A stretch of DNA of 64,000 nt, from the NCBI GenBank assembly GCA_002269645.1, contig NIVC01003738.1:15621-79620 (forward strand), written 5' to 3'. The position numbers were made by a program, and so were the translations under genes. A model generated the notes under the pieces. That model was given only the letters and a program-made list of their open reading frames with translations, did not search any database and was not told where the DNA came from. The stretch is from Macrostomum lignano. Taxonomy: Eukaryota. Positions 1 through 63,750 of this stretch are shown here, piece after piece (positions within the stretch are counted from its first letter, which is position 1; each line of letters begins with the position of its first letter).

Positions 1-3000
1 TGCTCAGTTCGACTCGCGAATGGCAGCAGGCGAGAGGCTGAGTTGGTGAGCGACTGGCCGGTCTTGACTGACTGATTTTCCACTTTGAGGCTGAGATCTC
101 AGGGCATTCTGTGATTTTCAGTTCAAGATCTCAAGACCGGGCAGTGATCGGATTCGAGTCACCCATTTTGAGTACTTTGTGGAGGAGACGGAAATCCCGC
201 GGACTCTGACCTGCTGGCAGGGGAACCCAGCGGCTCTGCAGATTGAGAGGGAAATCGCTGCGACATGCAAGTCTAGAGATTTGCGGGTGCAGCGGTCATT
301 CAGGGCTCTGTACAGTTGTACACCTATAGATCCATTTGTATGCACTTTTAATTGTAGCTGATAAGGGAAGCTTCACTCTATCGGTCTCTCTGATGTGGGT
401 CTCGGGCAGGAAGGTTCTCTTAGAAGCCGAAGCGCAGCGATTCTTTCCAGAGCCCAGGATTCAGTGTTCGATCAGGGCGGTGACGGAGCAGCCTTTGAAA
501 GTTGAGAGTCAGGTGAGGACAGGTGCACTGTCTTTGAGTGAGCGACACCGCTGACAGCACGAGTTGGTCTACAATCTGACCACCACGCCACAACCCCAAG
601 TTCCCAGTCACCGCGCCACCGCGTCACCGCGGCCTATCCTTACACGAAGCACACGTAAAATGCAGGTACCCCTCATTCGATGTCGTTTAACTTTCAGAAC
701 CGGTCTGTAGTGAAGGACAATAAAAGCAGGGTTCTGCTGTCAGTTCGCTCAAGGTTCAGCTTTCACGCATCGCTCTCAATGCACGGAGGCCAAATTCTGT
801 GCTGGGTGAATTTGACTGGCAGCAAAAATCATGTCACGAGTACTGTGAAAAAAAAATTAAATATAACGCAGATAAGTGGTGAGAAATATGCAAAATTTGA
901 TTTCTATATTTATTCGATATGAGCCACCCCTCACCCAGCCACCCCTCACCCAGTCACCCCTCACCCAGCCACCCCTCACCCAGCCACCCCTCACCTAGTC
1001 ACCCCTCACCCAGCCACCCCTCACCCAGCCACCCCTCACCCAGCCACCCCTCACCCAGCCACCCCTCACCCAGCCACCCCTCACCCAGACACCCCTCACC
1101 CAGCCACCCCTCACCCAGTCACCCCTCACCCAGCCACCCCTCACCCAGCCACCCCTCACCCAGCCACCCCTCACCCAGACACCCCTCACCCAGCCACCCC
1201 TCACCCAGTCACCCCTCACCCAGCCACCCCTCACCCAGCCACCCCTCACCCAGCCACCCCTCACCCAGCCACCCCTCACCCAGCCACCCCTCACACAGCC
1301 ACCCCTCACCCAGCCACCCCTCACCCAGCCACCCCTCACCCAGCCACCCCTCACCCAGACACCCCTCACCCAGCCACCCCTCACCCAGCCACCCCTCACA
1401 CAGCCACCCCTCACCCAGCCACCCCTCACCCAGCCACCCCTCACCCAGCCACCCCTCACCCAGACACCCCTCACCCAGCCACCCCTCACCCAGCCACCCC
1501 TCACCCAGACACCCCTCACCCAGCCACCCCTCACCCAGCCACCCCTCACCCAGCCACCCCTCACCCAGCCACCCCTCACCCAGCCACCCCTCACCCAGCC
1601 ACCCCTCACCCAGCCACCCCTCACACAGCCACCCCTCACCCAGCCACCCCTCACCCAGCCACCCCTCACCCAGCCACCCCTCACCCAGACACCCCTCACC
1701 CAGCCACCCCTCACCCAGCCACCCCTCACACAGCCACCCCTCACCCAGCCACCCCTCACCCAGCCACCCCTCACCCAGCCACCCCTCACCCAGACACCCC
1801 TCACCCAGCCGCCCCTCACCCAGCCACCCCTCACCCAGTCACCCCTCACCCAGCCACCCCTCACCCAGCCACCCCTCACCCAGCCACCCCTCACCCAGCC
1901 ACCCCTCACCCAGCCACCCCTCACCCAGCCACCCCTCACCCAGCCACTCACTCGCACTGCAGAGCCGTGCCAGACGGCCGTAGACCTGGGCTCGAGTCCG
2001 TACTGGGAGGTGGACCAAACCCGCCAGATCGCAGTGACCTCCAGCGCCTGCAGCATCTGGAACGTGAGCCACAGCTGCCGGCTGCTGCAGGCTGATGGCG
2101 CTTCACCCGTGCCGCTCCGCAGAGTTGAAGTACGCTTGCACTGAGATTGGCCAAAGTGCTCAGAGAAGTGCAGAGCCTCACCTGCCCCAATCTGCACCCT
2201 CATTCGCATTGCAGCAGAGCAGCTTCAGCAGCGCTCACCTGCTGCAGGTGAGCAGGTCGATGGCTCACCAGAACTGGTCCGTTCGCTGCAGCGTCAACCA
2301 GTCAGGTGTTGTGTATGATGAGGCTGAGAGTCTGGAGCAGCTGCGACCGCTGATTTTCTGTGAGTGCCGAACAGTGCATGAAGCCAGTCAACTGTGAACG
2401 CTTTGCTTGAATGCGATTTCCAATTTCACTGCAGACCCGGCAAGCATTCAGGTAAATGGCAGCATTGAGAGCTCGCGACTGCACCTGGCTGTGGCTGCCT
2501 CCGACGCTCGGCCTCCGGTGTCATCCGTTGTCTGCCAGATCGCGAATTCTTCTGTGAGTGCTTAATGCGAGCCAGAGATTTGTCTCATTAATACAGGCTA
2601 GAAGCGTGCAATTTCTAATAAAGTTTCATATATTTTTTCTCTAAGTGTCACGAACTTTAAACTTTACATCTTTTCACAAAACTAAAATGGTGCGATGAAA
2701 ACTTAGTTATTAAAAAATGATTCAAGCGAAGAACCACAGGCTAAAGAGATCTGAGACCGGGTTCCGATGGGTCAGCGGGAGCTGATGGTCTGGCACTGGC
2801 ACAAACTCATCGTTGTTGCGCATCTTCAATGTAGATTTGGTGTGCAAGACTAGAGAACCCAGGTGACTGACTAGCGCTTTTCTTACCTTTCGTGACTTTC
2901 CTAGCCTGATTGTAGCCAAGATGCGGCCTCCCACATCCAGCCAGAACTGCATTGACTTAATGGCAGAGCTGTAGTATACATGTGAACCTGTGTGTATCAT

Positions 3001-4850
3001 TATTCTAACGCTGCTGCATCCCAATATTGGTCCGGCAAAGAGTGCAGGAATGAAAACCCCATCGCATCTGCGTCCTAGCCAGCCCCTGTAGGATAATGAG
3101 GAGAAATAGGGATCCTAAACTCGATGTCAACTTGAGCACCGGAATGGAAGCAAATGCTCAACTGTGGACCAAACTGACTCATTGAAAACAAGTTCGTAAA
3201 AATCAGGTTAAATCAAAATTAAAAGTCAACTCTTTCACTGTCCTCATTCACAGAGAGCTGAACTGACGCGGATGCAAAACAGCCACACCTGGAAGGAACA
3301 CGGCAGCATTACACCACCAGCATGTGCATCGCTGAATAACGAATCGACTTTTCTCATCAACTTCACTGCTCAGCAGGACTTCAATGGCTCGACGATTTTT
3401 CAAACAAGCGAACAGGTCTTTCGTAACTGCCCCCCAAAGGAAACAGGTAACTCATTTTTACCGACACATAACAGCCAATCGCAAATAAAATGTCGTTAAA
3501 ATAGTAAAACAGCAAAATATTATGTATTTACCTTTGTCAATTCAAAGCTCTAGACTTTCCAAAGCTGTAAAATTAAAGTACGATTTCCGACCGAAGAGTA
3601 ACCTAAATTTCGCTATAAACTGGTATTGAACACAAAATATTAGTAAACTGCAGCATTTAAAGAAATTGTCCCTGCATTCAACACAGCGTCTCAATAGCTG
3701 GATGCACTTCCAGAGGCCCTCCGTCAGGTCACGTTGTTCTTTATGTCTTCCAGGTCTTCAAATCGGGATCCCTAGAGAGCTATGGGGGACCTGCCAGAAA
3801 TCGCAGGGGGCATGTCTGGTGAATAAGGTGATGGCTCAGCTCAAGCTGATGCGTTGTCGTGATGCAGCGATTGGGCATTGTTGCTCCCGCCGCATCCTCG
3901 GCATGAGCCTCTTCTTAAAGTTCTGATTTACAGCTTGTCCCTGTGGCACAAACTCGTGATTGATGAGGCCCCGCGAATACATTTCTCGCTAGCGCTGGGA
4001 ACCTGGCTAAAGCTCTCTATTTTACTTTTGTTTCAGATGAAGATGGAAGTTTCACTCTATCGGTGTCTCCGGTGTGGATCCCGAGCAGGAAAGTTGAGTC
4101 AACGGGTACGAGGCTTGAGCCAGACTCACTTTGCTTAAATTTTAATTGAGAACATCAGAGGTCATAACAGGAAACTTACCAGCAGGTTCAATTAACTTTG
4201 CAGATCCATTCTCAACCGTGTACGCCTTTCCACTGTCGCACCTGCTCCTTGCATCCGGTTCGGTGATAGCCGTAATTGTGATGGTGGGCATCGCCTCATC
4301 TGTGATTACCTGGGTAATTACGAGCTAAAACCTTTTTTCTGGATAGCTTTTGTCAGTCAGTCAGTCAGTCAGTCAGTCAGTCAATCAGTCAGTCAGTCAG
4401 TCAGTCAGTCAGTCAGTCAGTCAGTCAGTCAGTCAGTCAGTCAGTCAGTCAGTCAGTCAGTCAGTCAGTCAGTCAGTCAGTCAGTCAGTCAGTCAGTCAG
4501 TCAGTCAGTCAGTCAGTCAGTCAGTCAGTCAGTCAGTCAGTCAGTCAGTCAGTAGTCAGCTGTTTACCTTGCAGAGAGTTTCCCGGTCCCGATTAGCCGC
4601 AGTGGCTGCTCAGCGCAGAGGCGGTGGCGCACTTCGGATGCAGCCGCTGGCAGCCGTGGCCTCCGCGGGCGCCGGCAGCAGCGCGTACGACTACCCGTCC
4701 ACGAATGCGACAGCTCAGGGTAGCAGGAGCCACAGCGAGGCCGGAGAGTCCAACAACATACCCAGTGTCTACCTGGTGCTGAGTCCGTCGAGGAGGTCTC
4801 AGCAGCAGCAGCAGCTGGTCAGCAGTTTTGAGCCGAGGCAGCAGAGCTAA
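1..4850 (+). CDS. Receptor family B copy B1 (3' part; 5' exons lie upstream of the window): Ig-like domains, TM, ITIM-bearing tail
   Basis: Hand-spliced exons with consistent phases: <1-45, 122-266 (GC donor), 358-512, 698-878, 1963-2129, 2215-2359, 2435-2553, 3254-3446, 3754-? (3' boundary unresolved; in-frame TGA near 3924 and a 23-nt length difference versus B3), 4037-4105, 4159-4313 (TM: [24 protein letters not shown]), 4575-4850 (RVSRSRL...AYDYPS...SVYLVL...stop). Exons are homologous to B2, B3 and B4. Confidence 0.75.
921..1946. repeat. 15-bp minisatellite (CACCCCTCACCCAGC)n in a B1 intron
   Basis: About 68 near-perfect units; source of the spurious SHPSP/GWVRG ORFs. Confidence 0.97.
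4159..4313 (+). CDS. B1 transmembrane exon
   Basis: Acceptor catcag|AG, hydrophobic run of about 24 aa, donor TGG|gtaatt (phase 0) joins in frame to the basic RVSRSR of the next exon. Confidence 0.75.
4352..4559. repeat. (GTCA)n microsatellite
   Basis: Direct inspection. Confidence 0.98.
4575..4850 (+). CDS. B1 cytoplasmic-tail exon with ITIM-consensus SVYLVL (4764-4781)
   Basis: Acceptor ttgcag|AGA; 91 aa then TAA; S-x-Y-x-x-L fits (S/I/V/L)xYxx(I/V/L); same exon at 47072-47348. Confidence 0.75.
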   Translation, partial: RVSRSRLAAVAAQRRGGGALRMQPLAAVASAGAGSSAYDYPSTNATAQGSRSHSEAGESNNIPSVYLVLSPSRRSQQQQQLVSSFEPRQQS

Positions 4851-7478: not shown

Positions 7479-10344
7479 GGAATTGCTGAGATGTCAAGGC
7501 TGAGGTCAAAAGCTGATTTGACCAGGAAATTAAACAGAAATTTGAGCAGAGTTTTGAGCAGGGATTTGACCTCATGTAGTTTATTTAAAAAAATTATTCC
7601 ACTCTTTGTTGGCTCCCCAACGTGGGGCGCTGATTGCTAGCTTGGGGCTATAGTTACTTACTCTGACAGTACTGACAGCAATGGAGCCCGCTAGGAGCTA
7701 GGCAGACTGCCTTTATTACAAAATCTAATCACTAATCTAATCACTAATCAATCTAATCAATCAATCTAATCACTAATCTAATTACTAATCAGAGTCCGCT
7801 TAGTCCGATTATTCCTAGAAAGTACTTCATGGTGTTCCGAATCCTCGAAGTACGAGCATGTACAGATGTACAAGCAAGTGTCAGTGACTTAGTCAACAAA
7901 ATCACTCGGGGTCATAAAAAGCAGATTTATCAATCTTTATAAGCCTTGTGTACGAGTCCTACAGTTGCCATCTGAGACAAAAACATTGCTCCATCTGGAA
8001 AATAAATCATGGTCAAAGCCAGAAATAGAGCTAGATCAATGTGATTTCTATTCAAAGCCAAATTTCCTGCTCTTGGTAATAACATCAAGCTAAGTTAAGG
8101 GGTCTCTTGAGAAACTGCTGAGACCAGTAACTCTATCTGTCTGTAGCTCAGCACATCAACTTGAGTTGTTTGAATCGCCCAATTGCAGAACTTCCAACGG
8201 TTTTTTCTGTCAGTCGGTCTACTGGTATCAGCTTTGCAGTGAGTAGCGCGAATGCCATCTAGTTTCTAGACACGCAGACACTAGGACAGAAAGACAGACA
8301 CACAGACACTAAGACAGACAGACAGACACTAGGACACTAAGACAGACAGACACTCAGACACTAAGACACGCAGACACTAAGACAGACAGACAGACACTAG
8401 GACACTAAGACAGACAGACACGCAGACACTAGGACAGAAAGACAGACACACAGACACTAAGACAGACAGACAGACACTAGGACACTAAGACAGACAGACA
8501 CTCAGACACTAAGACACGCAGACACTACACAAGACACTAAGACACGCAGACACTAAGACACGCAGACACTAAGACACGCAGACACTAAGACACGCAGACA
8601 CTAAGACACGCAGACACTAAGACACGCAGACACTAAGACACGCAGACACTAAGACACGCAGACACTAAGACACGCAGACACTAAGACACGCAGACACTAA
8701 GACACGCAGACACTAAGACACGCAGACACTAAGACACGCAGACACTAAGACACGCAGACACTAAGACACGCAGACACTAAGACACGCAGACACTAAGACA
8801 CCCAGACACGCAGACACTACACAAGACACTAAGACACCCAGACACGCAGACACTACACAAGGCACTAAGACACCCAGACACTAAGACACTCAGACACGCA
8901 GACACTACACAAGACACTAAGACACCCAGACACTAAGACACTCAGACACGCAGACACTACACAAGACACTAAGACACGCAGACACTAAGACACGCAGACA
9001 CGCAGACACTACACAAGACACTAAGACACCCAGACACGCAGACACTACACAAGACACTAAGACACTCAGACACGCAGACACTACACAAGACACTAAGACA
9101 CTAAGACACGCAGACACTACACAAGACACTAAGACACTAAGACACGCAGACACTACACAAGACACTAAGACACTAAGACACCCAGACACTAAGACACCCA
9201 GACACGCAGACACTACACAAGACACTAAGACACTCAGACACGCAGACACTACACAAGACACTAAGACACGCAGACACTACACAAGACACCCAGACACTAA
9301 GACACCCAGACACGCAGACACTACACAAGACACTAAGACACTCAGACACGCAGACACTACACAAGACACTAAGACACCCAGACACTAAGACACTCAGACA
9401 CGCAGACACTACACAAGACACTAAGACACGCAGACACTAAGACACCCAGACACGCAGACACTACACAAGACACTAAGACACCCAGACACTAAGACACTCA
9501 GACACGCAGACACTACACAAGACACTAAGACACCCAGACACTAAGACACTCAGACACGCAGACACTACACAAGACACTAAGACACGCAGACACTAAGACA
9601 CTAAGACACGCAGACACTACACAAGACACTAAGACACCCAGACACGCAGACACTACACAAGACACTAAGACACTCAGACACGCAGACACTACACAAGACA
9701 CTAAGACACTAAGACACGCAGACACTACACAAGACACTAAGACACTAAGACACGCAGACACTACACAAGACACTAAGACACTAAGACACCCAGACACTAA
9801 GACACCCAGACACGCAGACACTACACAAGACACTAAGACACTCAGACACGCAGACACTACACAAGACACCCAGACACTAAGACACCCAGACACGCAGACA
9901 CTACACAAGACACTAAGACACTCAGACACGCAGACACTACACAAGACACTAAGACACGCAGACACTACACAAGACACTAAGACACTAAGACACGCAGACA
10001 CTACACAAGACACTAAGACACTCAGACACGCAGACACTACACAAGACACTAAGACACCCAGACACTACACAAGACACTAAGACACTAAGACACGCAGACA
10101 CTACACAAGACACTAAGACACTAAGACACGCAGACACTACACAAGACACTGTAGTCTGGCTTGTTGGTGCGCGTGCACTTAGATGTGCACGTCTGGCTGG
10201 TTTGGGGGTTGGGGTTTAGCGCTGCGGCGTGTGCGTGCTTAGGGTGGTTACACCCACCCCAACTTTGGCAATAAATATATTGGCGTGAGCCAGTGAGGTC
10301 TCCTCACGTTTTGATTCTCTGCAATTCAACCCACGGTCTTACAC

Positions 10345-10406
10345 TGGTGGCAGCGGTGGGATCCGAACCCACGCCCTTTCGGACTGGTGCCTCAAACCAG
10401 TGCCTT
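10345..10406 (-). other. Extended primer-binding site: 62-nt copy of the 3' part of tRNA-Leu including CCA
   Basis: Reverse complement reads AAGGC A CTGGT TTGAGGC ACCAG TCCGAAAGGGC GTGGG TTCGGAT CCCAC CGCTGCCA CCA: anticodon arm, variable arm, T arm, acceptor strand and CCA. The 5' end of the tRNA is absent. Confidence 0.9.
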
Positions 10407-10452
10407 TTGAGAAATGTCCGCCATTTCTCAATTTTTTTGCTCAGCCGCCGTC

Positions 10453-11424
10453 ATGAGTGGCAGCCCAAAGCGACTAAACGTGCGCCAACTCAAGGCTGAG
10501 CTGCGAAACAGAGGCCTGCCTACTACGGGCCGCAAACAACAGCTTGCCAAGCGCTTGTCTACTGCACTTGGTTTAGAGCAAGCTGACGAAGACTTCAACA
10601 ACCCCGAGATGACTTCTGCTCCGGACGCCGAAGACGGCATCGGCAGCGCGGGCGAGGCGCCTCCGGGGGCGGGGAGCGACCGGCTGGCTGCGCTGCGGCA
10701 GGAGGTGGAGCTGCTCGAACTGCAAGTCCTGGAAGGCCGTCGTCGTGATCTTCAGCAACGGCTTCACACTCAGCAGCGCTTGACGGCTCAGCCCCAGCCA
10801 GCATCATCATCAGGTGAGCATAACGCACATGCCAGTCTGCAGTTGCCCGAGGTTTTTGAATCTGGGATGAGGGAGGCGGCTCAGCTTCAGGCCGCTAATT
10901 GCCAGGCTCCGACTCGCAAGTTGCGGAAGGTCGCAACTCGCAAGGTGGCGGAGGAGGACCGGTACAAGACGGCTTTCTATTCGACGCGCGGCCTGATGCA
11001 ATTCTGCAAGATGGGCTTCGGGATGTGCAATGCCCCGGCGACGTTCCAGCGGCTCATGGAGCTGGTGATGTCCGGCCTGTCCTGGGAGTCCGTGCTGACT
11101 TATATCGACGACATCATTGTCTTCATCAGGACGTTCGACGAGCACTTAGAGAGGCTGGCGGAAGTTTTTAAGCGGCTGCGAGACGCGGGACTCAAGCTGC
11201 ACAAGGCCAAGAGCGCGTTCGGCCATCGCCGGGTGCTGTACCTGGGACACCTGATCAGCGAGCAGGGCATCGCACCGGATCCCGGCAAGGTCGAGGCCAT
11301 TCGCAGCATGCCCAGCCCAACGACGAACGAGGAGGTGAAGCGGTTTCTTGGAATGCTGGGTTTCTACCGCCGGTTCATCCAGGCTTCAGCCAGACGGCGA
11401 GGGTCCTGCACGACGTCAGCGTGA
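10453..11424 (+). CDS. SAP-domain Gag N-terminus fused by deletion to the C-terminal half of RT
   Basis: LNVRQLKAELRNRGLPTTGRKQQLAKRL matches the SAP motif; junction near 10910-10945 goes directly to VAEEDRYKTAF...PFG-like GFGMCNAPATFQR...YIDD. No capsid, zinc knuckle or protease. Confidence 0.8.
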   Translation: MSGSPKRLNVRQLKAELRNRGLPTTGRKQQLAKRLSTALGLEQADEDFNNPEMTSAPDAEDGIGSAGEAPPGAGSDRLAALRQEVELLELQVLEGRRRDLQQRLHTQQRLTAQPQPASSSGEHNAHASLQLPEVFESGMREAAQLQAANCQAPTRKLRKVATRKVAEEDRYKTAFYSTRGLMQFCKMGFGMCNAPATFQRLMELVMSGLSWESVLTYIDDIIVFIRTFDEHLERLAEVFKRLRDAGLKLHKAKSAFGHRRVLYLGHLISEQGIAPDPGKVEAIRSMPSPTTNEEVKRFLGMLGFYRRFIQASARRRGSCTTSA

Positions 11425-13431
11425 AATCGAGGGACTTCGCGTGGAGCAGCGACTGCGAGCGAGCGTTCGCGAGTTGAAGGACCGGCTGACGACAGCTCCG
11501 GTGCTGAGGCTGCCAGATTTCACCAAGCAGTTTGTGCTCAGCTGCGACAGCAGTCAGTTCGCCGTCGGCGCGGTGCTCAGCCAGCTGCACGGTGACGCCG
11601 AGCTGCCTGTGGCGTTCGCCTCTCGCACCCTCAACAAGGCCGAGCGCAACTACTCGGCGACCGACCGCGAGCTGCTGGCGCTTGTCTGGAGTTTGAAGCA
11701 CTTCAGGACGTACCTGCTGAGTGTTCCGAGCTTTAGAGTCTACTCGGACCACCGGCCACTGCAAGGTCTGCTGGCAACGAAGGACCCGAAGGTCGGCTGG
11801 CGCGATGGCTTTCTACGCTGCAGCAGTTTTCGTTCGAGCTGCTGTACCGGCCTGGCATGGACAACGTCGTGCCGGATGCGCTGAGCCGGGTGGCCGGCAC
11901 GCGCCTGCAGCCTCGGTGGGACGACAGCCGCCTGCACGAGGAGCAACTGCAAGATCCGCTGCTGAGCAAGGCGTTCCAGGCGCTGACCGAAGGGATTGAC
12001 AGCCTGTCCGATTCATGGGCGGCGCAGGTTCGCGAGCTGCTGGACGAGGCCTCGGTGAGCTCGGCGGGAGTCCTGCTGGTCGGTGGCCGGCCAGTCATTC
12101 CCGGTCACCTGCGGCCACATTTCCTGCAGCAGGCGCACTCGTGTGACCAGAGCGGACACCTCGGCGTCGACAAGACCGGAGCGAGATTGTCTGAGCGCTG
12201 CTGGTGGCCTGGTCTGCGACGGGACGTCGAGAACTGGGTGGCCAGCTGTGCGGTCTGCCTGGCCAAGAAGAGTCCAACCAAGCCGCAGAAGGCGCCGCTA
12301 CAGTCGACGTGCCAGCCGACGGCTCCGTGGCAGCTGGTGCAGATCGACATCAAAGGGCCGCTTCCGCGTACGACTGATGGCAAGGCGTACATCCTGAGCA
12401 TGTGCGACGCCTTCTCCAAGTGGATGGAGACGGCAGCCCTGGCGGCGATCGACGCGGTTACGGTGGCGGATGCGCTGCTCAAGTCGGTGGTTCTGCGTCA
12501 CGGCGCTCCTCAGGTGCTGCACAGTGACCAGGGACGGCAATTCGAGAGCGAGGTGTTCGGCCGGCTCTGCGAGAAGCTGGGCGTCGAAAAGACGCGCACG
12601 TCGCCGTTTCATCCGAGCGGCAACGGAATCGTCGAGCGAGGCAACCGGACGCTCGGCGATATGCTGGCGACGACGGTGGCCGAGAACCAGCAGGATTGGG
12701 ACAGCAAGCTGCCATATGTGACCTGGGCCTACAACACCTCCGTGCACAGCACCATCGGCCTCAGTCCGTACCAGGTCCTCCACGGCTGGCCACCGAGGCT
12801 GGATCTCGACAGCTGGCTGATAAGCGGCGACCGGCCGGCAGCCGACGGTGGACATCACGGCTTCCTGCGGCGGACTCAGGAGAACCTGCAGAGCGCCTTC
12901 GACACGGTGCACGGCCGACTGCGGAGCGCCCAGGCCGAGCGCAACCGGCTGGCCAACCAGGACTCTCGGTTTGTGCCGTTCGAAGAGGGCCAGCTCGTGA
13001 TGCTGCGCAACTCCGTCGTCAAGCGCGGCCAGACGCGGTGTTTGAGCGCCAAGTGGAAGGGGCCGTACCGAGTCCTGAGGCGCCTGGGCGAGGTCAATTA
13101 CCGCATCCAGGACGAGACCGGCCGCAGGCGCCGGCTGGTGGTGCACCACGACCGCCTCAAGTGCTTCGTGCAGCGGCGGGCGTCACTGGAGCTTCCGGCC
13201 GCAGCAGACCACCAGCCGCCGGCCGCCGACTTCGACAACGACGGCACCGTCGCTGAGCCGCCCGGGCAGGCGGCCGATCCTGGCGGCGACGCGGTGACCT
13301 TCTGGCCCGAGCTGCAGGCAGACGAGGCACCCGAGGAGCAGCCGGCGGCACCGGCCGAGCCGGTCACGGTTCCGCGGCGGTCGGCGAGAGAGCGGCGGCC
13401 ACCTGACTTGTACATGGCGGGCTTTGCTTGA
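11400..13431 (+). CDS. Gypsy RNase H (frameshifted) and integrase
   Basis: LSCDSSQFAVGAVL...DRELLALVW (RNase H); H..GH...C..C zinc finger, QIDIKGP, HSDQG, VERGNRT (DDE core), WKGPY. Frame breaks near 11390 and 11800. Confidence 0.9.
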
Positions 13432-14327
13432 CTCTGGAACTGTCTTTTGCTTCTAGGGGGAAAGTAGTGTAGTCTGGCTTGTTGGTGCGCGTGCACTTAG
13501 ATGTGCACGTCTGGCTGGTTTGGGGGTTGGGGTTTAGCGCTGCGGCGTGTGCGTGCTTAGGGTGGTTACACCCACCCCAACTTTGGCAATAAATATATTG
13601 GCGTGAGCCAGTGAGGTCTCCTCACGTTTTGATTCTCTGCAATTCAACCCACGGTCTTACAACACTAAGACACTAAGACACGCAGACACTACACAAGACA
13701 CTAAGACACTCAGACACGCAGACACTACACAAGACACTAAGACACCCAGACACTACACAAGACACTAAGACACTAAGACACGCAGACACTACACAAGGCA
13801 CTAAGACACCCAGACACTAAGACACTAAGACACTAAGACACGCAGACACTACACAAGACACTAAGACACTAAGACACGCAGACACTACACAAGACACTAA
13901 GACACCCAGACACTACACAAGACACTAAGACACTAAGACACGCAGACACTACACAAGACACTAAGACACCCAGACACTAAGACACTAAGACACTAAGACA
14001 CGCAGACACTACACAAGACACTAAGACACCCAGACACTAAGACACTAAGACACTAAGACACGCAGACACTACACAAGATACTATGACACCCAGACACTAA
14101 GACACTCAGACACTAAGACACGCAGACACGCAGACACTACACAAGACACTAAGACACCCAGACACTACACAAGACACTAAGACACTAAGACACGCAGACA
14201 CTACACAAGACACTAAGACACTAAGACACTAAGACACTAAGACACGCAGACACTACACAAGACACTAAGACAGGCGCTACCAAAGCAGCAGTAATTTGAA
14301 CTCAAAACTGAACAAAATTTCAATCAG

Positions 14328-15469
14328 AATCGAAGCCGCCAATCACTACTGCGCGAACCAGCTGACGCTAAAAATCAGTCTGGACGATTTCTATCACCGA
14401 GACGAGATTTTGATTCCGCAACTGGCGCACGAGACTGAGGTCAGTCAGGCACGACATCGCAAGTGCAGGTGGATTGTAAGCTTCAACACCGGCAGCAAAT
14501 GCACGCAGATTGTACTGGCTGGGTTGCCAGCTCGGGAGAACTCCAGTTTCAGTTCGACTGACAGTCGTTTAAGATTCACCTCGATGTCGAATGCAATAAC
14601 GACCGTCTTACCTGGAATATTCCACGTCGTCCCTTTGGAGAGCAAGTACGTTACCTGAAGTCAGTGCTTGTCGCTTTATTATCATTATTTCGCCCAACAC
14701 AAGTGAAATGGGAAGTTTGCAATAAAGACCCCCTGCAAGGAGGCGGCCTCTCCTGCGTGCGCCCTGCCCCGTGCTCTGTGCTGATTGGCTGCGGCCAGCC
14801 CGTCTGTGACACGAAGGCTGCGCCCTGCCCCGGGCGGGGTTCTGATTGGCTGGCCTTACGCTCGTATGCGCAAGTTGGCGGGCTTCGCCGATGGGGCCAC
14901 CTACGCCCCCCCCCCCCATTGTAAGGGTTTTCTTTATTATTTATTACTTTTTCGCTTCCTGGTGGGTCTTGGTTCCATGGCGACAGTAGCTGACTTTGGA
15001 GGTCAGGTAAGCAGCCTATTCAGCTGTGTACAAACCGAGGCCAACTCTGCTTAACGTGCAGCGTTAGCGGCACTTCGACTTAATTTAATTTACACGTACA
15101 AAATAAAAATAAATAAACTGATTTCAGTAAAAAAGCATGAGGTGTTCTTAGCTTTAAATCTAAGTTCCTAGGTTACACACCGTTTGCAGCAAAATCTTTC
15201 TAGTGGAGGCCAGCTGGGATCCGCGGACTGATGGCCAAAACGCGGCAAAGTTGAGATTTCTGCTGCCACTTCCCAGCATCTGCAGCCGCGACATGCTGAG
15301 CTACCGGAACAGCTGCTTTGCTGTTGACTCACTTCAGCAGAGCTTGACAGATGCGCTGTCCAGCATCAGGGGTGACGCTCAACTAGCCAGCTTCACCAGT
15401 TGGTCCGAGATAGAGGAGTTCATTGCATCCAGTGAGTGTTTTTCACATGTAGATAGGTAGGTAGATAGG

Positions 15470-15503
<34 letters not shown>

Positions 15504-46487: not shown

Positions 46488-46527
<40 letters not shown>

Positions 46528-46652: not shown

Positions 46653-46692
<40 letters not shown>

Positions 46693-46733
46693 CCCACTCA
46701 CTCAAGTCAGTCAGTCAGTCAGTCAGTCAGTCA

Positions 46734-46773
<40 letters not shown>

Positions 46774-47057: not shown

Positions 47058-47709
47058 CTGTTCACCTTGCAGAGAGTGTCCCGGTCCCTATTAGCCGCAG
47101 TGGCTGCTCAGCGTAGAGGCGGCGGCGCACTTCGGATGCAGCCGCTGGCAGCCGCGGCCTCCGCGGGCGCCGGCAGCAGCGCGTACGACTACCCGTCCAC
47201 GAATGCGACAGCTCAGGGTAGCAGGAGCCACAGCGAGGCCGGAGAGTCCAACAACATACCCAGTGTCTACCTGGTGCTGACTCCGTCGAGGAGGTCTCAG
47301 CAGCAGCAGCAGCTGGTCAGCAGCTTTGAGCCGAGGCAGCAGAGCTGAGAGATGGCTATCTTTTAAATCGTTTCCAACTCAAAAACTACAGTCTAAAAAA
47401 TCTCTACTTGTCAATTTTATAGTTCGACGGGTTATCAGAGGTTGTAGCCGGCGAACGGGGACAAAATTATTTTTATGAGTCTTTAGTGAAATCGAGTACT
47501 TTTCTGCTTCTTTAAAATGATTATTTATAAAAAGTAAATACAATAAAATAAATTATTGCAGAACATTGTCTTTCCTGACAAATAGAGAAGAAAATAAAAG
47601 TCGATCAAGAAAGGAGACAGATTCTATCGCAAAATCAAAGGTGCACAAACTCCAAATTCGGGACTGAAAGCTTATTTAATAATTTCAGCTGAAGGTGCGC
47701 GTTGAACAT

Positions 47710-52840: not shown

Positions 52841-53339
52841 AGGCGCTACCAAAGTACCAAAGCTGCAATAATTTCAACGCAAAGCTGAACAAAACTTCAA
52901 TCAGAATCGAAGCCGCCAATCACTACTGCGTGAACCAGCTGACGCTAAAAATCAGTCTGGACGATTTCTATCACCGCGACGAGATTTTGATTCCGCAACT
53001 GCCGCACGAGACTGAGGTCAGTGAGGTGCGCCATCGCAGGTGCAGGTGGATTGTAAGCTTCAACACCGGCAGCAAATGCACGCAGCTGGTACTGGCTGGG
53101 TTGCCAGCTCGGGAGAACTCCAGTTTCAGTTCGACTGACAGCCGTTTAAGATTCACCTCGATGTCGAATGCAAAAACGACCGTCTTACCTGGAATATTCC
53201 ATGTCGTTCCTTTGGAGAGCAAGTACGTTACCTGTAGTCAGTGCTTGTCGCTTTATTACCATTATTTCGCCCAACACAAGTGAAATGGAAAATTTGCAAT
53301 AAAGACTCCCTGCACGGAGGCGGCCTCTCCTGCGTGCGC

Positions 53340-53535
53340 CCTACCCCGTGCTCTGTGCTGATTGGCTGCGGCCAGCCCGTCTGTGACACGAAGGCTGCGC
53401 CCTGCCCCGTGCCCTGTGCTGATTGGCTGCGGCCAGCCCGTCTGTGACACGAAGGCTGCGCCCCGCCCCGTGCCCTGTGCTGATTTGCTGCGGCCAGCCC
53501 GTCTGTGACACGAAGGCTGCGCCCTGCCCTGCGCG
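53340..53535. repeat. 61-bp tandem repeat x3 containing ATTGG (CCAAT) boxes, in an A3 intron
   Basis: Period 61 (53355, 53416, 53477); single unit in A1 at about 14765-14850. Confidence 0.85.
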
Positions 53536-54130
53536 GGGTTCTGATTGGCTGGCCTTATGCGCAGTTGGCGGGCTTCGCTGATGGGGTCGCCTAGTCCCGC
53601 CCTATTGTACGGGTTTTTCTTTATTATTTATTACTTTTTTTGCTTCCTGTTGGGTCTTGGTTCCATGGCGACGAATCATTCACGGTAGCTGACTTTGGAG
53701 GTCAGGTAAGCAGCCTATTCAGCTGTGTACAAACCGAGGCCAACTCTGCTTAACCTGCAGCGTTAGCGGCACTTCAGACTAATTTAATTTACACGTACAG
53801 AATATAAATAAATAAACTGATTACAGTAGAAAAGCATGAGGTGTTCTTAGCTTTAAATCTAAGTTCCTAGGTTACACACCGTTTGCAGCAAAATCTTGGG
53901 ATCCGCGAGCTGATGGCCAAAATGCTGCAAACTACAGATTTCTGCTGCCACTTCCCAGCATCTGCAGCCGCGACATGCTGAGCTACCGGAGCAGCTGCTT
54001 TGCTGTTGTCTCACTTCAGCAGAGCTTGACAGATGCGCTGTCCAGCATCAGGGGTGACGCTCAGCTAGCCAGCTTCACCAGTTGGTCCGAGATAGAGGAG
54101 TTCATTGCATCAAGTGAGTGGTTTTCACAT

Positions 54131-54535
<405 letters not shown>

Positions 54536-55869
54536 TTGATAACTTGAAACTCTAGACAGAGAGGTATTGTGAGCAAGTGTTAAAAATAGAATTATTGGCT
54601 TCCAGTGAAATTTTCACGACTTGCGAGTCCAAAAGTCCTTCTGCTTGAGTTGCTCATGCTCTTAACAATTATCTTTATAGTAAGTCTCCAAATAGCTGAC
54701 CCTCTTTCATACAAAAAGTCACATCAACATTGCAGTAAGATCGCGAATGCCTCTGGCGGCAACTGTGTTTCGTTGAGAGTCGACTCAAACGGACCTGTTA
54801 TTGCCTTTGTTAACTGCAACATCCCGATGCTGTCGCTAGTCAGCTTCCCAGAGACTCATTCCGGTCTCAGCCAGTTGGACTGCAATATATCAGGCAGATT
54901 GTCTGACTTGTTCTCCGCAAATGAGGCTGTGAAACAGGTGAAAGCGGATGCTTCAATGAAGTTGCAGGGTGACGAAGACGATCGTGTGCCACCAGGAGTA
55001 TCAAGTTTCGAGCTCAATGAAGCTATGAGAGGGAGTGAAAATCAACCTTCAGCCAGCAATCAGAAGGCTCCCTTTGCCATACCGGTCATCGCGGCAATAC
55101 TCCAATACTCTTTGTTTTTACTCTGTTTTTACTTTACACAACTTTTTACTTTCTGAACTATTTCTATTGTCAATCGCATTCAAGTACCGCCTCTGCATAG
55201 GTAATTCTGCAAACTTAGTTTTTTTGATTTAGATAAAACTCAAAAACTCTAAGTACTTCAGATTAATAATGATGCCTAGTAAAAGGCTGAAATGATTTGT
55301 GTTTTATTAACGTATTGATTTTCAGTTTAGTGCTAATCATATTTACTATCGATATTATTCATGTATATAAATTGAGTATAAGCCAGTCGGTGTTTATCAT
55401 TATTTTTTAACTAAACACACAAATTGATCAATTCATTTTTACAGTGTAAACGGGTTCAATTTTTTTATTAGCATGAGACATTTTAAAACACTGAGAGGAG
55501 CTATTTACTACCTACCAGGCAGATGCTTGGCTTGAAGTAAATCCTGATTTCTGCGTCAGCTGCTTTGGCTATTACAGAATACAGAGTCACAGAGTAATAA
55601 ATAAGCCAAACTGACTAAATTCAAATGTAAGGATTCAAAACATTCACATAAATGCTTAAAATAGCCTTAGTAAAAACAGTCCATTTTTCAGGGACATTAA
55701 CTGTAGCAGCAGTTCAAGGCAATCGTCGGAGAGGCGGCATATTGATGTAAACAAAGCAGGCAGTCATAAAATCTTCAAGTCCAAGCTGCATCCATCGCAC
55801 ACTGCGTAAAACTTTTAAGTAAAAATCGACATTAGCGAAAGCTTTCTTTAGCTAAATATTAGATTTTCA

Positions 55870-58800
55870 ATGAAGGATTTTTACAAATTGCTGCAGTTGT
55901 TGCTGCTATGCAACACGAGATTCACCGCCAGCAACCCAGACTGCTCCTCCACGAGTCAAGCCGGTGAGGCCAGCGAATTTAGCACGTAAAATGCATATCA
56001 ACTCCAGCTAACACAGAGATTGAAAGTAAGCACTATCTACTCTTTTCCAGTGACAGTGCAGCTGAGCAGGGCTGACGTTCTGCGCACCTGGCAACCCAGC
56101 GGTGCGCACTGCCGTTGGTGGGAGAGTCGGCAGTCAGAGACAAACCGATTCCCTGCTGCTGTGCGGCCCGGGCCTCGGTGGCTTGTGATGCAGCTGACGC
56201 AGCCGATGATGCTGGAGGCGGTAAGCGTGCGAGACTGGGGTGAGTGACGCTGACCGACTCATTCTCATGATGCATGATGAGGCAGAGGGAGCCTTGGACC
56301 CAAAGTGTGAGACAGTGTGATGCTAGCATCTAATTAGCACTCTGAGACAGTGTGAGACCAGCTAGTATCTAATTAGCACTCTGAGACAGTGTGAGACCAG
56401 CTAGCATCTAATTAGCACTCTGAGACAGTGTGAGACCAGCTAGCATCTAATTAGCACTCTGAGACAGTGTGAGACCAGCTAGCATCTAATTAGCACTCTG
56501 AGACGGTGTGAGACCAGCTAGCATCTAATCAGCACTCTGAGACAGTGTGAGATCAGCTAGCATCTAATTAGCACTCTGAGACAGTGTGAGACCAGCTAGC
56601 ATCTAATTAGCACTCTGAGACAGTGTGAGACCAGCTAGCATCTAATTAGCATCTAATTAGCACTCTGAGACAGTGTAAGACCAGCTAGCATCTAATTAGC
56701 ACTCTGAGACACTATGATACCAGCTAGCATCTAATTAGCACTCTGAGACAGTGTGAGACCAGCTAGCATCTAATTAGCACTCTGAGACAGTGTGAGACCA
56801 GCTAGCATCTAATTAGCACTCTGAGACAGTGTGAGACCAGCTAGCATCTAATTAGCACTCTGAGACAGTGTAAGACAAGCTAGCATCTAATTAGCACTCT
56901 GAGACAGTGTGAGACCAGCTAGTATCTAATTAGCACTCTGAGACAGTGTGAGACCAGCTAGCATCTAATTAGCACTCTGAGACAGTGTGAGACCAGCTAG
57001 CATGTAATTAGCACTCTGAGACAGTGTGAGACCAGCTAGCATCTAATTAGCACTCTGAGACAGTGTGAGACCAGCTAGCATCTAATTAGCACTCTGAGAC
57101 AGTGTGAGACCAGCTAGCATCTAATTAGCACTCTGAGACAGTGTGAGACCAGCTAGCATCTAATTAGCACTCTGAGACAGTGTGAGACCAGCTAGCAGCC
57201 AAGCACTCGTGTTGCAGATGGCCAGTGGCACGCAGCAGCTCCGGTCGGCTCGCCTGTGTCAGCGGTCGGAGCCTCGAGCCTCCCGCTGGAGCTGCAGCTG
57301 GAGGATCCGTGCCGCGCCAGCTGGGAGGCCTTCGGCAGCAGCGACCGCTGGAGGCAGATTGGGGTGAACGGAGTAGATCAAGTAAGCTGCTTCATTTGAA
57401 TTATCTTATCATAATAATGAAATTAATAAATCCATCCATTTCACACTTCAGCCCGTAGTTCGTTTCCTTGTGCTAAGTAGCTTGAGAACTGCTGGACTTA
57501 GCTGGAGGGCCGTCTCATTAACAGGTTCCAAAGAGACTTTTAAATTTTATGAAGTTATCACTGAATCATAGCTTATTGTGAATTAAGTGCTTTAGAAGCA
57601 GGTGCAATTTTTCTTGTAGGTCGCTTTCTACCGCTGAGCCTCACAGTAACTGACAACCGTTTTTGCCCTCTGAGAGACCTGTCCGCCTTGCACGATGGAG
57701 TTGAAGCCTGCTTCTCTGTTTCAAGATGTACCAGCGAATCAATTCAATGCTTCTTTAACCTAAGCAATGGCGCAACTCTGGAGCCGAGACTGGTCTGCTC
57801 AACTCTTCTTTATAGCGTGCTATCAATACTTCTTCTTGCACTGACTTGATACAAAATTCGCTTTTTCAGCTACGAAGCCAAAAGCAGCAAGCTGAATTCG
57901 AGTTCACAGCCAATTTCTCGCTGCACGGAGCACTGCTCACCTGTCTTCTGCCTGATCGGCCAGGGATTCGAATCGAGCAGACCATTGGAATCGTTGGTGA
58001 GAAAGAAGTGTCTGCCTGAGTTAAAAAATGTATTTTAAGTCCGCTTTGAAGATTACAAAGCGAAACATGCACTTTTCAGTCACACCAAGTGTTGAACTGT
58101 CGTTATCAACCGTGTGGGTGATTGGTCGCAGAGCCAAGGTGCACTTTTTCTCAAGCCCAGCTTATCCTCCTCAGCAGCACAGGTGCCAAATTATCTCTGG
58201 CAGCAGCACCTGGGAACTGAATGAGCATTTTAGTAAGGTAAGTAGTATTATATTATTGTTGAAAATGCTGTACCTTGCCCAATCATGTACTTTTCCATGA
58301 AATAAACTTCCAGACTAGACAGGCTTATATCAGGAACAGCATCAACATGTCGCTAACTGAAGTAAAGTCTGAATTTGTTGTCACAGTCACGTCAGACATG
58401 CTGAATGGCACCGTGAGATGCAGTAGCAGCTATAAAAGTACAAGTCAAGGAGAAGTCATGAAAGATATCGATATTTCAAGCATCAGCGGTAAGTGCTTGC
58501 ATTAGAGAATCTCCTATACGCCCGATTGGAAGAGCCATAAAATCTCCTCATTTCAGAGCCTTGCACAACTGCCATTCATGTAGACAACATCCAGTACTCG
58601 TATCAGGTTGTACAAGTGACGTCACTGAAGTGCAGCATTTGGAATGTTCAGCACAGCTGCTGGCTTGTCAAGCCCAAAGAAGATGTCCTGGAGCATCTAA
58701 TTAAGCTTGCTGTACGGTTCTTTGATTTTGTAATAATGCTTTTTATTCAGAAGTTACTGCAACAATATCTGATGTCTTCTATTGCAGCAAGACGGCTTCA

Positions 58801-61119
58801 GCAGCACTCACAGGTTGAATATTATGAAACAAGAGCAGAAAAGAGACTGGCTAGTGAGATGCAGCGTTAATCAGTCGGGAGTGACATACCCGGATGTGGA
58901 AATTGAGTTAGCAAGCGATGCTGACAGTGAGTCAAACGATGCATTCAATCACTGTTAATTGTTCCAATGCAAGTTCAAAGGTTTTTTACCACTTAAATCT
59001 ACACTACACGTTGCTACATTTGTACTCGTATTAATACGAGCGTAATGCAAGAGACCTGCGAGCACCCCGACGCTACGTCTTCGGCGACCTTGTCCGCAAT
59101 CAGCTGCCCGTTCCGCTCACTCCTGATCACATACGAGCGTACGAGCGCCTCAATACTGCACACAGGCACGCACTCATACGCACGCTCCCACAAGGTGTAC
59201 TGCGGCCCTGACTTTCTAAGCGTCAGGCATGTACCTCTCTGGGCCTTAAGGGCTGGTCCTCATGAGCACTGAGCACGTTTGCTCTACTCACCTCCAGAAT
59301 AAAAACAAATGAGCGTTTTTAATATTATAAACTGTACTCGTTCGTATTCTGTTGGCTGCCATTAAAGCGACTTTTGATAACAGTCAACCCACAGCCAGCG
59401 TGGAGTCGACCCAAATTAATTGGTCATTCCACATGTAAGCACTCGAGAGTGCTTACTTAAGCAACTATTCTTAATCGTTAAATTTTCAGGTAGTGTATCT
59501 TCATTTGCTTATTACCCCTCGTAACTTTGAGGTTGTAACTGTTGCGAGCCTAAGTGTTCGATGTGTAACTACTCTGCCACTTACTAACCCCACTTTCTTC
59601 AGCTTTCTACTATCAGTGTGGACTGAGTTGCATAATTTTGCCGATTTTATCTGCCCTCGGCCTCATCCTGAGCTGCATGATTATTCGAAGAATTCGCCGC
59701 GCTAAATCAGCAAAGCCAAACTCGACTTCAAGTAGAAGTTCGACATTTAGAGGACGACGTACCCTCCTCTCGAGTGCGGCCACCTCGCCGCAGGCACAGG
59801 TAGGGTTAGCCACAGATTTAGTTTGTACATTAGGGCACGCATGTAAGTGTCAAATACTGGTGTTTTGATGAAGAATAGCTTTAAACTTAAAAGAAAATTC
59901 TAGCTACCCGGGGTTGTTTTGGCTATTCGCTCAAGCACTTTTGCTATTGGCTTTTGCCTGAAACTGAAGCTATTTCTTAGATTAGCCTGGACACAGATTG
60001 CCTGGTAAATAGCGCTGCTTATCTGATCAGATTTCAGGTGTGCACAGAAGCACAGTTCTAATTAGAACTTCCCTCAGCCTGAACGGCAATATTACATAAG
60101 TCCATGTGACTAAAATTTAGCAGTGAATTTCGGTGCATCTAATACCAGCTTTTCTAGAGCTAGATCCACTTTTGTTTCTTTAAAAGTTTAATTCCCATTC
60201 TAAATAGCAATATAGTAGAGATATTCTGTTGAGTTTGTGAAATGAATTGCGATCGCTTTCAATCAAGCGTGCTATGGCCTGCACGAGTATTCTATGAAGC
60301 CGTAGCCCATTGGTCAATCATGGATGAATAAAACCTTTGGTCTAGTGCGGCGCTCTGATGTGCCAGCGGCCCAGGCTCGATTCCAAGTGCAGTCATTAAT
60401 TTGGGGCTAAATTGGAATCTCGGCTTGGCTCTGCTCGTGCAATTAACGCCCCTGATCAGGGCCAACCCCCAAGGCACAGTGAAGTGCACATGTCTAAGAT
60501 AAAGTTAGGGCCGCTGTAAACTCCTGTGTGAGTGAGTGCCTGTGCGTATGACTGCGTACGTATCGCGCGCTTGTGTGCCTGCTCAGGGGAGTCGGGGGAA
60601 TGGGCAGCAATGCCTCTCGCCGGTTGTGACAATGTCGCCTAAAGTGCATCATGGGTGCAAACAGCTCCTTGCCTGTAACAAAAAAATGGCCCTTATATTC
60701 CGTAGCCCAGAATCATGAGCAGGCTGAACTGCTAGATAGACAAGGAAGAAGCTGGCGTGATCAAAGCAATCTGTTAACTTTCTCACCTTTAAGGCCTATT
60801 AAAGTATCATGTTAAAATTCTTCAAAAGAAATGACTCTGAATAACAGAAATCAATCGTTTCCACCCCCAGCGAGCGGCACCACAGCTCACTCATCATCAG
60901 GTTGATTCCTCGGCGTCAGTGAGCACAGGTGGTCCACCACCTGCAGAAAGCAGCAGCCGCGGCAATGAAAACAAGTCAATTAGCAGTCAAGAGACCGACC
61001 CAGTGTACGAAGAAGTATCTTTGTGTGTCTACAGGCCGGTGCACCCGCTGCCACGGTACTCACGGCAGTTCTCAGAAAAAAATTGTCGACGCGCCCACGA
61101 CTCCAGTCGGTTTGATTGA
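55870..61119 (+). CDS. Family B copy B4: intact 630-aa type I membrane receptor (signal peptide, discoidin-like, 3 Ig-like, TM, Tyr-motif tail)
   Basis: Twelve GT-AG exons, all phases consistent and no stops: 55870-55963, 56051-56239, 57218-57381, 57452-57524, 57620-57792, 57870-57996, 58080-58237, 58314-58488, 58557-58711, 58788-58926, 59603-59799 (TM GLSCIILPILSALGLILSCMII then RRIRR), 60871-61119 (PVYEEVSLCVYRPV). Total 1893 nt. Confidence 0.82.
56322..57197. repeat. 39-bp minisatellite, about 22 units
   Basis: Same unit as 18498. Confidence 0.96.
60339..60645 (+). mobile_element. SINE family 2 in the last intron of B4
   Basis: Reverse complement of 6139-6480. Confidence 0.75.
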
Positions 61120-63109: not shown

Positions 63110-63750
63110 ATGGATCACAATCTTGTATGCATTCTGGTGCTGTTACTGAGCTCAAGAATTGCATGCAATGCTCTGCTCTGCACTGATGCAAGTCACGAGA
63201 AGGGTCAGCTGAGTTACTTACTGCCTTTTGAGCCTTTCATTCATGCCTCAGAAAATTTAGCGAATCCTTTGCGATAAATGTTTTAGTGACAGTGCAGCTG
63301 AGCAGGGCTGACGTTCTGCGCACCTGGCAACCCAGCGGTGCGCACTGCCGTTGGTGGGAGAGTCGGCAGTGCTGGAGGCGGTGAGCTTGCGAGACCGGGG
63401 TGAGTGACGCTGACCGACTCATTCTCATGATGCATGATGAGGCAGAGGGAGTTTGAGACACAAAGTGTGAGACAGTGTGAGACCAGCTAGCATCTACGAG
63501 CGTAATTAGCACTCTGAGACAGTGTGAGACCAGCTAGCAGCCAAGCACTCGTGTTGCAGATGGCCAGTGGCGCCAAACACTCGTGTTGCAGATGGCCAGT
63601 GGCTCGCAGCAGCTCCGGTCGGCTCGCCCGTGTCAGCGGTCGGAGCCTCGAGCCTCCCGCTGGAGCTGCAGCTGGAGGATCCGTGCCGGCCAGCTGGAGG
63701 CCTTCGGCAGCAGCGACCGCTGGAGGCACCTTGGAAGATCTTACAACAAG
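63110..63750 (+). pseudogene. Family B copy B5 (5' part), frameshifted
   Basis: Signal exon 63110-63203 (MDHNLVCILVLLLSSRIACNA); exon 2 at 63287-63399 is 113 nt instead of 189 nt (76-nt deletion); exon 3 has a duplicated acceptor (63560 and 63592) and small deletions. Confidence 0.75.

Follow-up and report, generated by a model that had tools for sequence, protein, structure and literature searches.

The question raised by a stretch of 64,000 nucleotides (nt) from the flatworm Macrostomum lignano (assembly GCA_002269645.1, contig NIVC01003738.1, positions 15,621 to 79,620 of the forward strand; this whole stretch is called the window below, and positions are counted from its first letter) is what is encoded by the tandem, short-exon genes that it contains, here called B1 to B5, and how their N-terminal exons come to be nearly the same in genes that otherwise differ. 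We think it fairly probable that the window belongs to an extensive and unstable tandem array of lineage-specific type I transmembrane (TM) receptors in Macrostomum lignano, whose members share one homogenised head domain. The family is a previously undescribed, lineage-restricted version of the familiar tandem immunoglobulin (Ig)-type receptor array, and its unusual feature is the homogenised head cassette.

The five B paralogues lie in tandem on the plus strand and are visible as segmental repeats when the window is compared with itself; one is complete (B4), one is intact within the window (B1) and three are broken (B2, B3 and B5). The original prediction, a model's description of this DNA from its letters and open reading frames (ORFs), proposed a tandem complex of paralogues that the ORF track had missed, and this was correct: these are real, short-exon GT-AG genes, and the complex is indeed chimeric and rich in pseudogenes. 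The exons, expected to be 67-280 nt long, measure 67-276 nt across the B genes, and every defined intron is GT-AG. The signal-peptide exons placed at 18057, 40424, 55870 and 63110 each open with ATG, and tail exons with Tyr motifs are present at 4575-4850, 47073-47348 and 60871-61119. The TM exons fared unevenly: the one at 59603 is exact and the one at about 29922 corresponds to a TM-like ORF at ~29930-30000, but 4159 was wrong, the B1 acceptor being 4204. The exon 2/3 junction had been read as RDWGDGQW, and the actual reading is RDW-D-GQW.

Database proteins of the family are labeled P00xx below, and L001 to L003 are three other loci that carry copies. When seven exons of B3 were spliced by hand, the five introns with defined boundaries were all GT-AG with GTGAG donors, and the spliced peptide found 21 database proteins (E 1e-113 to 2e-13), every one of them from Macrostomum lignano. 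Exon-by-exon comparison pairs B1 with P0001 and B4 with P0008 (about 88-100% identity, reaching 100% in the tail exons). Such agreement is far beyond chance. The complete gene and the one that is open as far as the window extends are as follows.

55870-61119, plus strand: B4, complete gene; 12 exons, all introns GT-AG, open frame of 1,893 nt, 630 amino acids (aa)
55870-55963 (signal peptide), 56051-56239, 57218-57381, 57452-57524, 57620-57792 and 57870-57996, plus strand: B4 exons 1-6
58080-58237, 58314-58488, 58557-58711 and 58788-58926, plus strand: B4 exons 7-10
59603-59799 (TM) and 60871-61119 (tail, with DPVYEEV), plus strand: B4 exons 11-12
1-4850, plus strand: B1, 3' part, its 5' end lying beyond the window; open frame in the P0001 arrangement from exon 5 to the stop
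1-45 (part of exon 5), 122-314, 358-512, 698-878, 1963-2129 and 2215-2359, plus strand: B1 exons
~2437-2550 and ~3240-3400, plus strand: candidate extra Ig-module exons of B1, from tblastn with P0031 and ORF segments
4204-4313, plus strand: B1 TM exon
4575-4850, plus strand: B1 tail exon with the stop at 4848; the P0001 tail is 100% identical

In B4 the signal peptide is followed by the head (exons 2-4), then by three modules of two exons each, the TM exon and a 120-aa tail ending ...ETDPVYEEVSLCVYRPV... Six of its exons are 93-100% identical to P0008, and P0025, an RNA-based model, is 43% identical to the B4 protein (E 1e-109). The B4 introns have phases 1,1,0,1,0,1,0,1,0,1,0, and therefore each module of ~100 aa consists of two exons between phase-1 introns, as had been proposed; the same pattern holds in B1 to B3. 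The models P0008, P0007, P0012 and P0015 use GTGAGA donors that lie within B4 exons 8 (58412/58413) and 10 (58853/58854) and then continue with the tail exon. This in-frame skipping of the TM exon could be either a secreted/non-TM isoform or a prediction artefact.

The most unusual property of these genes is found at their 5' ends. A cassette that is nearly uniform between genes begins with exon 2, runs through intron 2 and its 39-bp minisatellite, and stops after 127 of the 167 nt of exon 3. The mean pairwise DNA identities among 12 copies with flanks, taken from four loci (the window and L001 to L003), have sharp boundaries.

Last 70 nt of intron 1: 35% identity
Exon 2: 96.8% identity
Start of intron 2: 94.8% identity
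End of intron 2: 90.8% identity
Exon 3, first 127 nt: 93.4% identity
Exon 3, last 40 nt: 43% identity
Intron 3: 40% identity
18240-18824, plus strand: B2 cassette; 39-bp minisatellite, 4.6 copies
40588-41328, plus strand: B3 cassette, with 8.6 minisatellite copies (40845-41181)
56051-57344, plus strand: B4 cassette, with 22.2 minisatellite copies (56322-57197)

The 189 nt of exon 2 match those of B3 at 95-100% in 12 full-length copies; the B5 copy is partial. The effect on the proteins is evident when B4 is compared with P0025, because the heads are ~95% identical and the other ~350 aligned residues ~30% (an estimate from the alignment). The 5' edge of the identity falls at the exon 2 splice acceptor, as it would for an exon-defined unit, and the head protein is nearly invariant, two observations that would be expected if the cassette owed its uniformity to protein-level purifying selection alone or to a mobile exon pair that had spread recently. 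However, protein selection cannot account for intron 2, which is itself 91-95% identical, minisatellite included, between introns 1 and 3 that show only random-level identity. In addition, the 3' boundary is inside exon 3 and not at an exon edge, and the cassette matches no Rfam family and contains no other recognised element. The cassette is always in frame and at the same position in highly diverged genes, so that mobile spread would amount to homologous replacement, which is conversion. We consider it quite improbable that selection alone or a mobile exon pair explains the pattern.

The near-invariance of the head is thus a DNA-level phenomenon. The head of P0045 is clearly homologous yet only 35% identical, which indicates that the domain can diverge, and the L/H variant of exon 3 forms a patchwork that does not follow body type (for example, B4 versus the copy L2d). 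The intron within the tract, the boundary in the middle of an exon, the patchwork variants and the divergence of P0045 all favor conversion or exchange over protein selection or a mobile exon. The cassette is likely kept uniform by gene conversion or unequal exchange, and the intronic 39-bp minisatellite is a probable recombination substrate or hotspot. B2 itself combines the start of one L002 gene type with a body that belongs to another. The two parts meet near the shared cassette, between window positions 18688 and 19504, which is the outcome expected of exchange within or near it.

The modules that follow the head were examined by modeling the fold of P0025, the paralogue noted above as 43% identical to B4, in place of a window protein. 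AlphaFold2 gave a predicted local distance difference test (pLDDT) score of 80-90 for residues ~280-600 (modules 2-4) and lower values in module 1; a TM helix is clearly predicted at 608-638. Foldseek returned 478 matches to the PDB at E<=1e-3, and the best 50 were nearly all multi-Ig receptors; the top matches, all with a probability of 1.0, included SYG-2 (E 7.5e-13), KIT, PirB/LILRB3, SIRP-alpha, ICAM-5, CD22 and nectin. Only distant family members reach the Pfam cut-off for C2-set_2 (P0044 with 21.4 bits against 21, and P0055 with 21.0). The cysteines and motifs of the modules are kept across paralogues that are ~30% identical. The two-exon modules, as modeled, are tandem Ig-like beta-sandwich domains, which agrees with the identity originally assigned to them.

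The tails fall into classes that differ in the context of their tyrosines, for example SVYLVL in B1 and B3, ETDPVYEEV in B4 and DEDGGYINW; EDPDxYxxI is common to two tail types that are otherwise unrelated. SVYLVL fits the consensus of the immunoreceptor tyrosine-based inhibitory motif (ITIM), a pattern that we estimate to occur by chance at ~6% per Tyr. The tail of P0050, which belongs to a sister subfamily, has sequences that fit both an ITIM (VVYAQV) and an immunoreceptor tyrosine-based switch motif, or ITSM (TEYTEI). The tails of the members scanned are 38-130 aa long.

From these parts a mode of action can be proposed. Each gene encodes a signal peptide, a head of ~140 aa, three or four Ig-like domains, one TM helix and a tail of 55-130 aa with Tyr motifs. 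The first ~100 aa of the head are near-identical in all paralogues, probably through homogenisation of the cassette from the exon 2 acceptor to the middle of exon 3, and the same head on every member would presumably bind the same ligand or partner. This common head would be coupled to stalks of different lengths and to different phosphotyrosine docking sites. We infer that the head is the ligand-binding part, that the tails signal through their tyrosines and that conversion is the cause of the shared head. Such a 'one head, many outputs' family of recognition/signaling receptors is the reading that we prefer, and we hold it with somewhat more confidence than doubt.

The closest vertebrate parallel would be the classical paired immune receptors, in which ITIM-bearing and activating members share a head that conversion keeps identical, as in Siglec-5/14 or KIR/LILR. 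Siglec-5/Siglec-14 and Siglec-11/16 are paired receptors whose ligand-binding domain has been homogenised by gene conversion. The B genes resemble the Siglecs, and more loosely KIR, LILR/PirB and SIRP, in being type I TM proteins with tandem Ig domains, in forming clusters with pseudogenes and chimeras, and in having near-identical N-terminal DNA, intron included, on divergent stalks and tails with candidate ITIM-type motifs (SVYLVL in the B1/B3-type tails, and the ITIM-like and ITSM-like sequences of P0050). PirB/LILRB3, SIRP-alpha and CD22 are among the Foldseek matches; however, these matches reflect a generic tandem-Ig geometry at 8-13% identity. The B family also differs in having no sequence homology to these receptors, a head that is not an Ig V-set domain, ~30 or more members that share it instead of pairs, and a flatworm host. 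Among ~20 TM segments examined, none has the charged residue and short tail of an activating receptor, and no adaptor-coupled activating members were seen; classical inhibitory/activating pairing is unsupported for that reason. Therefore, the likeness to vertebrate paired receptors that had been suggested holds for the clustering, the near-identical head and the varied tails, and perhaps for the ITIM-consensus motifs, but not for the activating-type members, and we regard true paired receptors as unlikely.

The locus had also been likened to the Alr genes of Hydractinia, that is, to an allorecognition or self/non-self (mate, gamete) locus with polymorphic ectodomains that bind homophilically. 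As with Alr1 and Alr2, the genes encode degenerate Ig-like TM proteins of an invertebrate and form a lineage-specific cluster that is tandem, chimeric, rich in pseudogenes and missed by domain searches; the tails of the proteins have Tyr motifs. The array is rearranging rapidly (chimeric junctions and transposon insertions distinguish the window from L002), and the ratio of nonsynonymous to synonymous substitution rates (dN/dS) is at least 1 in some pairs. However, the membrane-distal domain of Alr is hypervariable and determines specificity, a role that this domain has in most recognition systems, whereas that of the B family is the most conserved and homogenised part. The hypervariable N-terminus that the analogy led one to expect is among the paralogues the least variable part of the protein, and it is for this reason that Hydractinia-type allorecognition is unlikely. 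Profile searches detected no homology to Alr or to any non-Macrostomum protein; the matches came from M. lignano wherever their source could be checked. Finally, M. lignano is a solitary worm and does not fuse. Altogether, an allorecognition locus seems very improbable to us.

The nature of the head itself (exons 2-4) is less clear than that of the modules. The F5/8-type-C domain proposed for these exons is plausible and weakly supported: a related head gives the fold, but the window-type head has no Pfam or PDB sequence match. Profile matches of the window-type head alone to PDB entries (for example, EP3 receptor and DDX52) were dismissed as noise. Five distant relatives (P0050, P0055, P0048, P0052 and P0062) share the Ig modules and have a different-looking, sister head. 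The Pfam scores of the sister head for F5_F8_type_C are below threshold (the best, for P0055, are 15.5 bits against 28.2 and 16.5 against 27.8), and it has a borderline PDB profile match to the fucolectin FBP32 (E 0.059). AlphaFold2 modeled the sister head of P0062 with moderate confidence (pLDDT 55-78), and its Foldseek matches were nearly all galactose-binding-domain-like, including the EphA2 ligand-binding domain (LBD; 2.7e-4), eel fucolectin (1k12), SUN, CBM32 and the F5/8C domain 2kd7. When the two heads were aligned, hhalign gave a probability of 10% and an E value of 0.003; they have a common position in the protein and a common W-L-x-h-x-L ... h-x-L-x-G pattern. By eye, and with an uncertain alignment, FPA in the window head faces FHT in the sister head, VRDWDGQW faces NRGDCCxER of fucolectin, and the His and second Arg of the fucose-binding motif H-x24-R-x-D-x4-R/K are not evident in the window head. 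From the modeled relatives, the head (~140 aa) is possibly a divergent galactose-binding-type jelly roll. With respect to proteins that carry F-type lectin, F5/8C or Eph-LBD heads (1k12, FBP32 3cqo and the discoidin-domain receptors), the likeness is in the fold class of the sister head (P0062 and P0055); the window head, in contrast, has no Pfam or PDB match and no confident model, and the B proteins have no kinase domain.

The family appears to be confined to one animal. A profile search of 5.8 billion proteins in a word-indexed database found 33 proteins, all 33 from M. lignano, and when 1.84 billion cluster representatives were scanned exhaustively with HMMER, 37 reached E<=1e-3. The 10 weakest of these 37 were checked, and nine are from M. 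lignano; the remaining one is an ENA protein (E 2.9e-4). No relative from a named non-Macrostomum species was found in either search. A word-indexed search with the head profile yielded 13 M. lignano proteins and no others, without recovering P0045, P0050 or P0055. Pfam had zero matches for B3, B4 and 10 close paralogues, and searches of the literature and its supplements found no publication on the family and, for the gene identifiers of its members, no expression data. The suggestion that the system is undescribed is thus borne out. The automatic names in UniProt are mutually inconsistent (SRCR, Vitellogenin, PLAT, SHR-BD, RHD, VWFD, Agenet, VASt, Spatacsin_C, protein kinase, Bgal_small_N and DUF2531 for P0002, P0007, P0011-14, P0019-21, P0023, P0028 and P0034), and none of these names is backed by a Pfam match in the members scanned; they are best disregarded.

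Four members (P0025, P0026, P0029 and P0030) are GenBank BOX15_Mlig models, which derive from an RNA-seq-guided transcriptome assembly (PMC5730564), and therefore spliced transcripts exist for the family. P0025 uses the same exon 2/3 junction as the window genes. Protocadherin-like long-range splicing was considered for P0029, which spans 77 kb of L002 (10001-87216), and was rejected as a duplicate-mapping artefact, because the model puts the last exon at 87004, in a duplicate that is 100% identical, although a 98.6% copy lies beside the gene at 17781-17990. The L002 array has a duplication with a period of ~68 kb.

The remaining copies in the window are damaged in different ways.

18057-22182, plus strand: B2, 5' body; exons 1-10, then a fourth Ig-module
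18057-18150, 18240-18428, 18698-18864, 18949-19015 and 19082-19254, plus strand: B2 exons 1-5
19331-19523, 19567-19721, 19905-20085, 20302-20468 and 20554-20698, plus strand: B2 exons 6-10
~20800-20890 and ~21910-22060, plus strand: B2 fourth Ig-module
27229-30010, plus strand: 3' remnant of a P0035/P0020-type paralogue joined to B2 (tblastn, P0035 at 89% identity; P0020)
27229-27387 (exon remainder) and ~29900-30010 (TM-like exon), plus strand: exons of the remnant
40424-47348, plus strand: B3, pseudogene with an in-frame stop and a lost TM exon
40424-40511, 40588-40776, 41202-41368, 41453-41519 and 41587-41759, plus strand: B3 exons 1-5
41836-42058 (weak donor), 42091-42245, 42415-42595, 43484-43650 and 43736-43880, plus strand: B3 exons 6-10
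47073-47348, plus strand: B3 tail exon
63110-63750, plus strand: B5, 5' end of a pseudogene, with the signal exon from 63110

B2 appears to be open through exons 1-10 with exon 5 at 19082-19254, a shift by one base that was read from the AG/GT positions. It has lost its own 3' end, and its own TM exon is absent; self-comparison indicates that the downstream part found in B1 and B3 has been replaced here. The remnant that takes its place is 98% identical to L002 25832-29474, and its first exon is split by a BEL/Pao retrotransposon (...NCSVAGD / EASTELSN...), at a point where L002 (25795-25832) is uninterrupted. Exon 9 of B3 has an in-frame stop (CSI*NVSHSC), and neither self-comparison nor tblastn found in B3 a counterpart of B1 4146-4352, the TM exon region, which has (GTCA)n in its place. 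In B5, exon 2 (63289-63399) has a 77-nt deletion and exon 3 (63592-63726) two 1-nt deletions; its signal peptide is 63% identical to P0005.

These lesions could mean that the array is mostly decaying junk, the remains of a dead or dying family. A retrotransposon in an exon of B2, the stop and lost TM exon of B3 and the frameshifts of B5 are what one would expect of such a family, as are introns flooded with micro- and minisatellites and a dN/dS that is elevated in some pairs. However, B4 keeps its 1,893 nt open over 12 exons with the phases correct, complete paralogues are represented by RNA-based GenBank models, and the Ig-module cysteines and motifs are conserved across paralogues at ~30% identity. 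We think it rather improbable that the family as a whole is dead or dying.

Several observations do weigh against our preferred reading of a shared-head receptor family. Three of the five B copies are broken, B4 exons 4 and 5 have weak donors (GTTCCA and GTCTGC), and the database models P0003, P0004, P0006, P0007, P0008, P0012 and P0015 skip exons 4-5 or the TM exon. The RNA-based models are paralogues at other loci, and the window copies are known from DNA alone. The head of P0025 (residues 13-172) has a pLDDT of <35 in the AlphaFold2 model and no fold. Short Tyr motifs easily arise by chance, and the dN/dS of 0.16-1.58 among B1-type copies comes from only 154 codons and is too noisy to be informative. 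As for the original prediction as a whole, its observation of the gene complex was confirmed, and its interpretation as a receptor locus is supported in part only.

A second set of genes, of type A, accompanies the B genes.

14299-16399, plus strand: A1, upstream of B2; by eye similar to a C-type-lectin-like domain (CTLD), with a C-terminal hydrophobic segment
36861-38200, plus strand: A2, divergent A-type gene upstream of B3
52876-55153, plus strand: A3, the A-type gene ahead of B4; ~700 nt separate the end of its last ORF from the B4 ATG

The order of A followed by B on the same strand recurs in L001 (~5738 and ~23900) and in L002 (~32288, 45626-48106 and ~78941), and several UniProt models fuse A with B. 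The A genes are a second lineage-specific family. Their ectodomain looks C-type-lectin-like by eye; there is no Pfam match for the A family, and the sole PDB sequence match, the CTLD of NKG2A (E 0.45), is non-significant. A first impression of a CUB domain received no support from Pfam. A and B may be duplicated, or even transcribed, as a unit, and by analogy with Nkrp1-Clr in the rodent natural killer complex they might be a linked ligand-receptor or co-receptor pair. One can go further and imagine a flatworm-specific recognition module made of a C-type-lectin-like A gene and a jelly-roll-plus-Ig B gene, amplified into arrays, in which a conversion cassette driven by the minisatellite gives ~30 or more divergent B receptors one head, and which would be an independently evolved counterpart of paired/multi-output immune receptors; this is a speculation to which we assign a rather low probability.

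The rest of the window is largely occupied by transposons and repeats.

22183-27228, plus strand: BEL/Pao long terminal repeat (LTR) retrotransposon; 286-bp LTRs 100% identical; RVT_1, Peptidase_A17 and DUF5641
10150-13661: LTR retrotransposon with reverse transcriptase, integrase and a SAP domain; 194-bp LTRs 100% identical
33307-34968, minus strand: intact piggyBac-type transposase ORF of 553 aa between B2 and A2 (DDE_Tnp_1_7, E 1e-67)
31115-32438: 26-bp satellite, 51 copies, with long spurious ORFs on both strands
922-1947, 20139-20290 and 42659-43467: 15-bp repeat (AGCCACCCCTCACCC) in the intron after exon 8
4352-4559 and 46326-47057: (GTCA)n between the TM and tail exons
21033-21460 and 44216-44621: 21-bp minisatellite in the fourth-module intron

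The BEL/Pao insertion looks very recent. The element at 10150-13661, which appears to be missing gag, protease and part of pol, sits in a (AGACACTA)n-type satellite that continues at 8268-10150 and 13662-14272. The repeats within the B-gene introns have conserved positions and copy numbers that vary between the paralogues. Rfam found nothing in the window. These transposons and micro- and minisatellites are consistent with the repeat-rich, partly duplicated genome of M. lignano (PMC5730564).

Other invertebrate families invite comparison. The Biomphalaria FREPs and the amphioxus VCBPs are, like the B genes, lineage-specific expansions that combine Ig domains with a possible carbohydrate-binding domain; in contrast, those proteins are secreted and diverse in their Ig/lectin part, whereas the B family is TM, with signaling-type tails and an invariant head. 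Free-living flatworms serve as models in stem-cell and regeneration research, and we know of no immune-type or recognition receptor family in them. The B family, restricted to a species or genus, fills arrays of >90 kb, is supported by RNA at other loci and is unseen by domain databases. Its sharply bounded, intron-including head is a clean natural case of region-specific concerted evolution within a gene family. RNA interference, in situ hybridisation and transgenesis are established in M. lignano (PMC5730564), and therefore the question is open to direct experiment. If the reading is true, every member of the family would bind one partner through its head and would differ from the others in its output.

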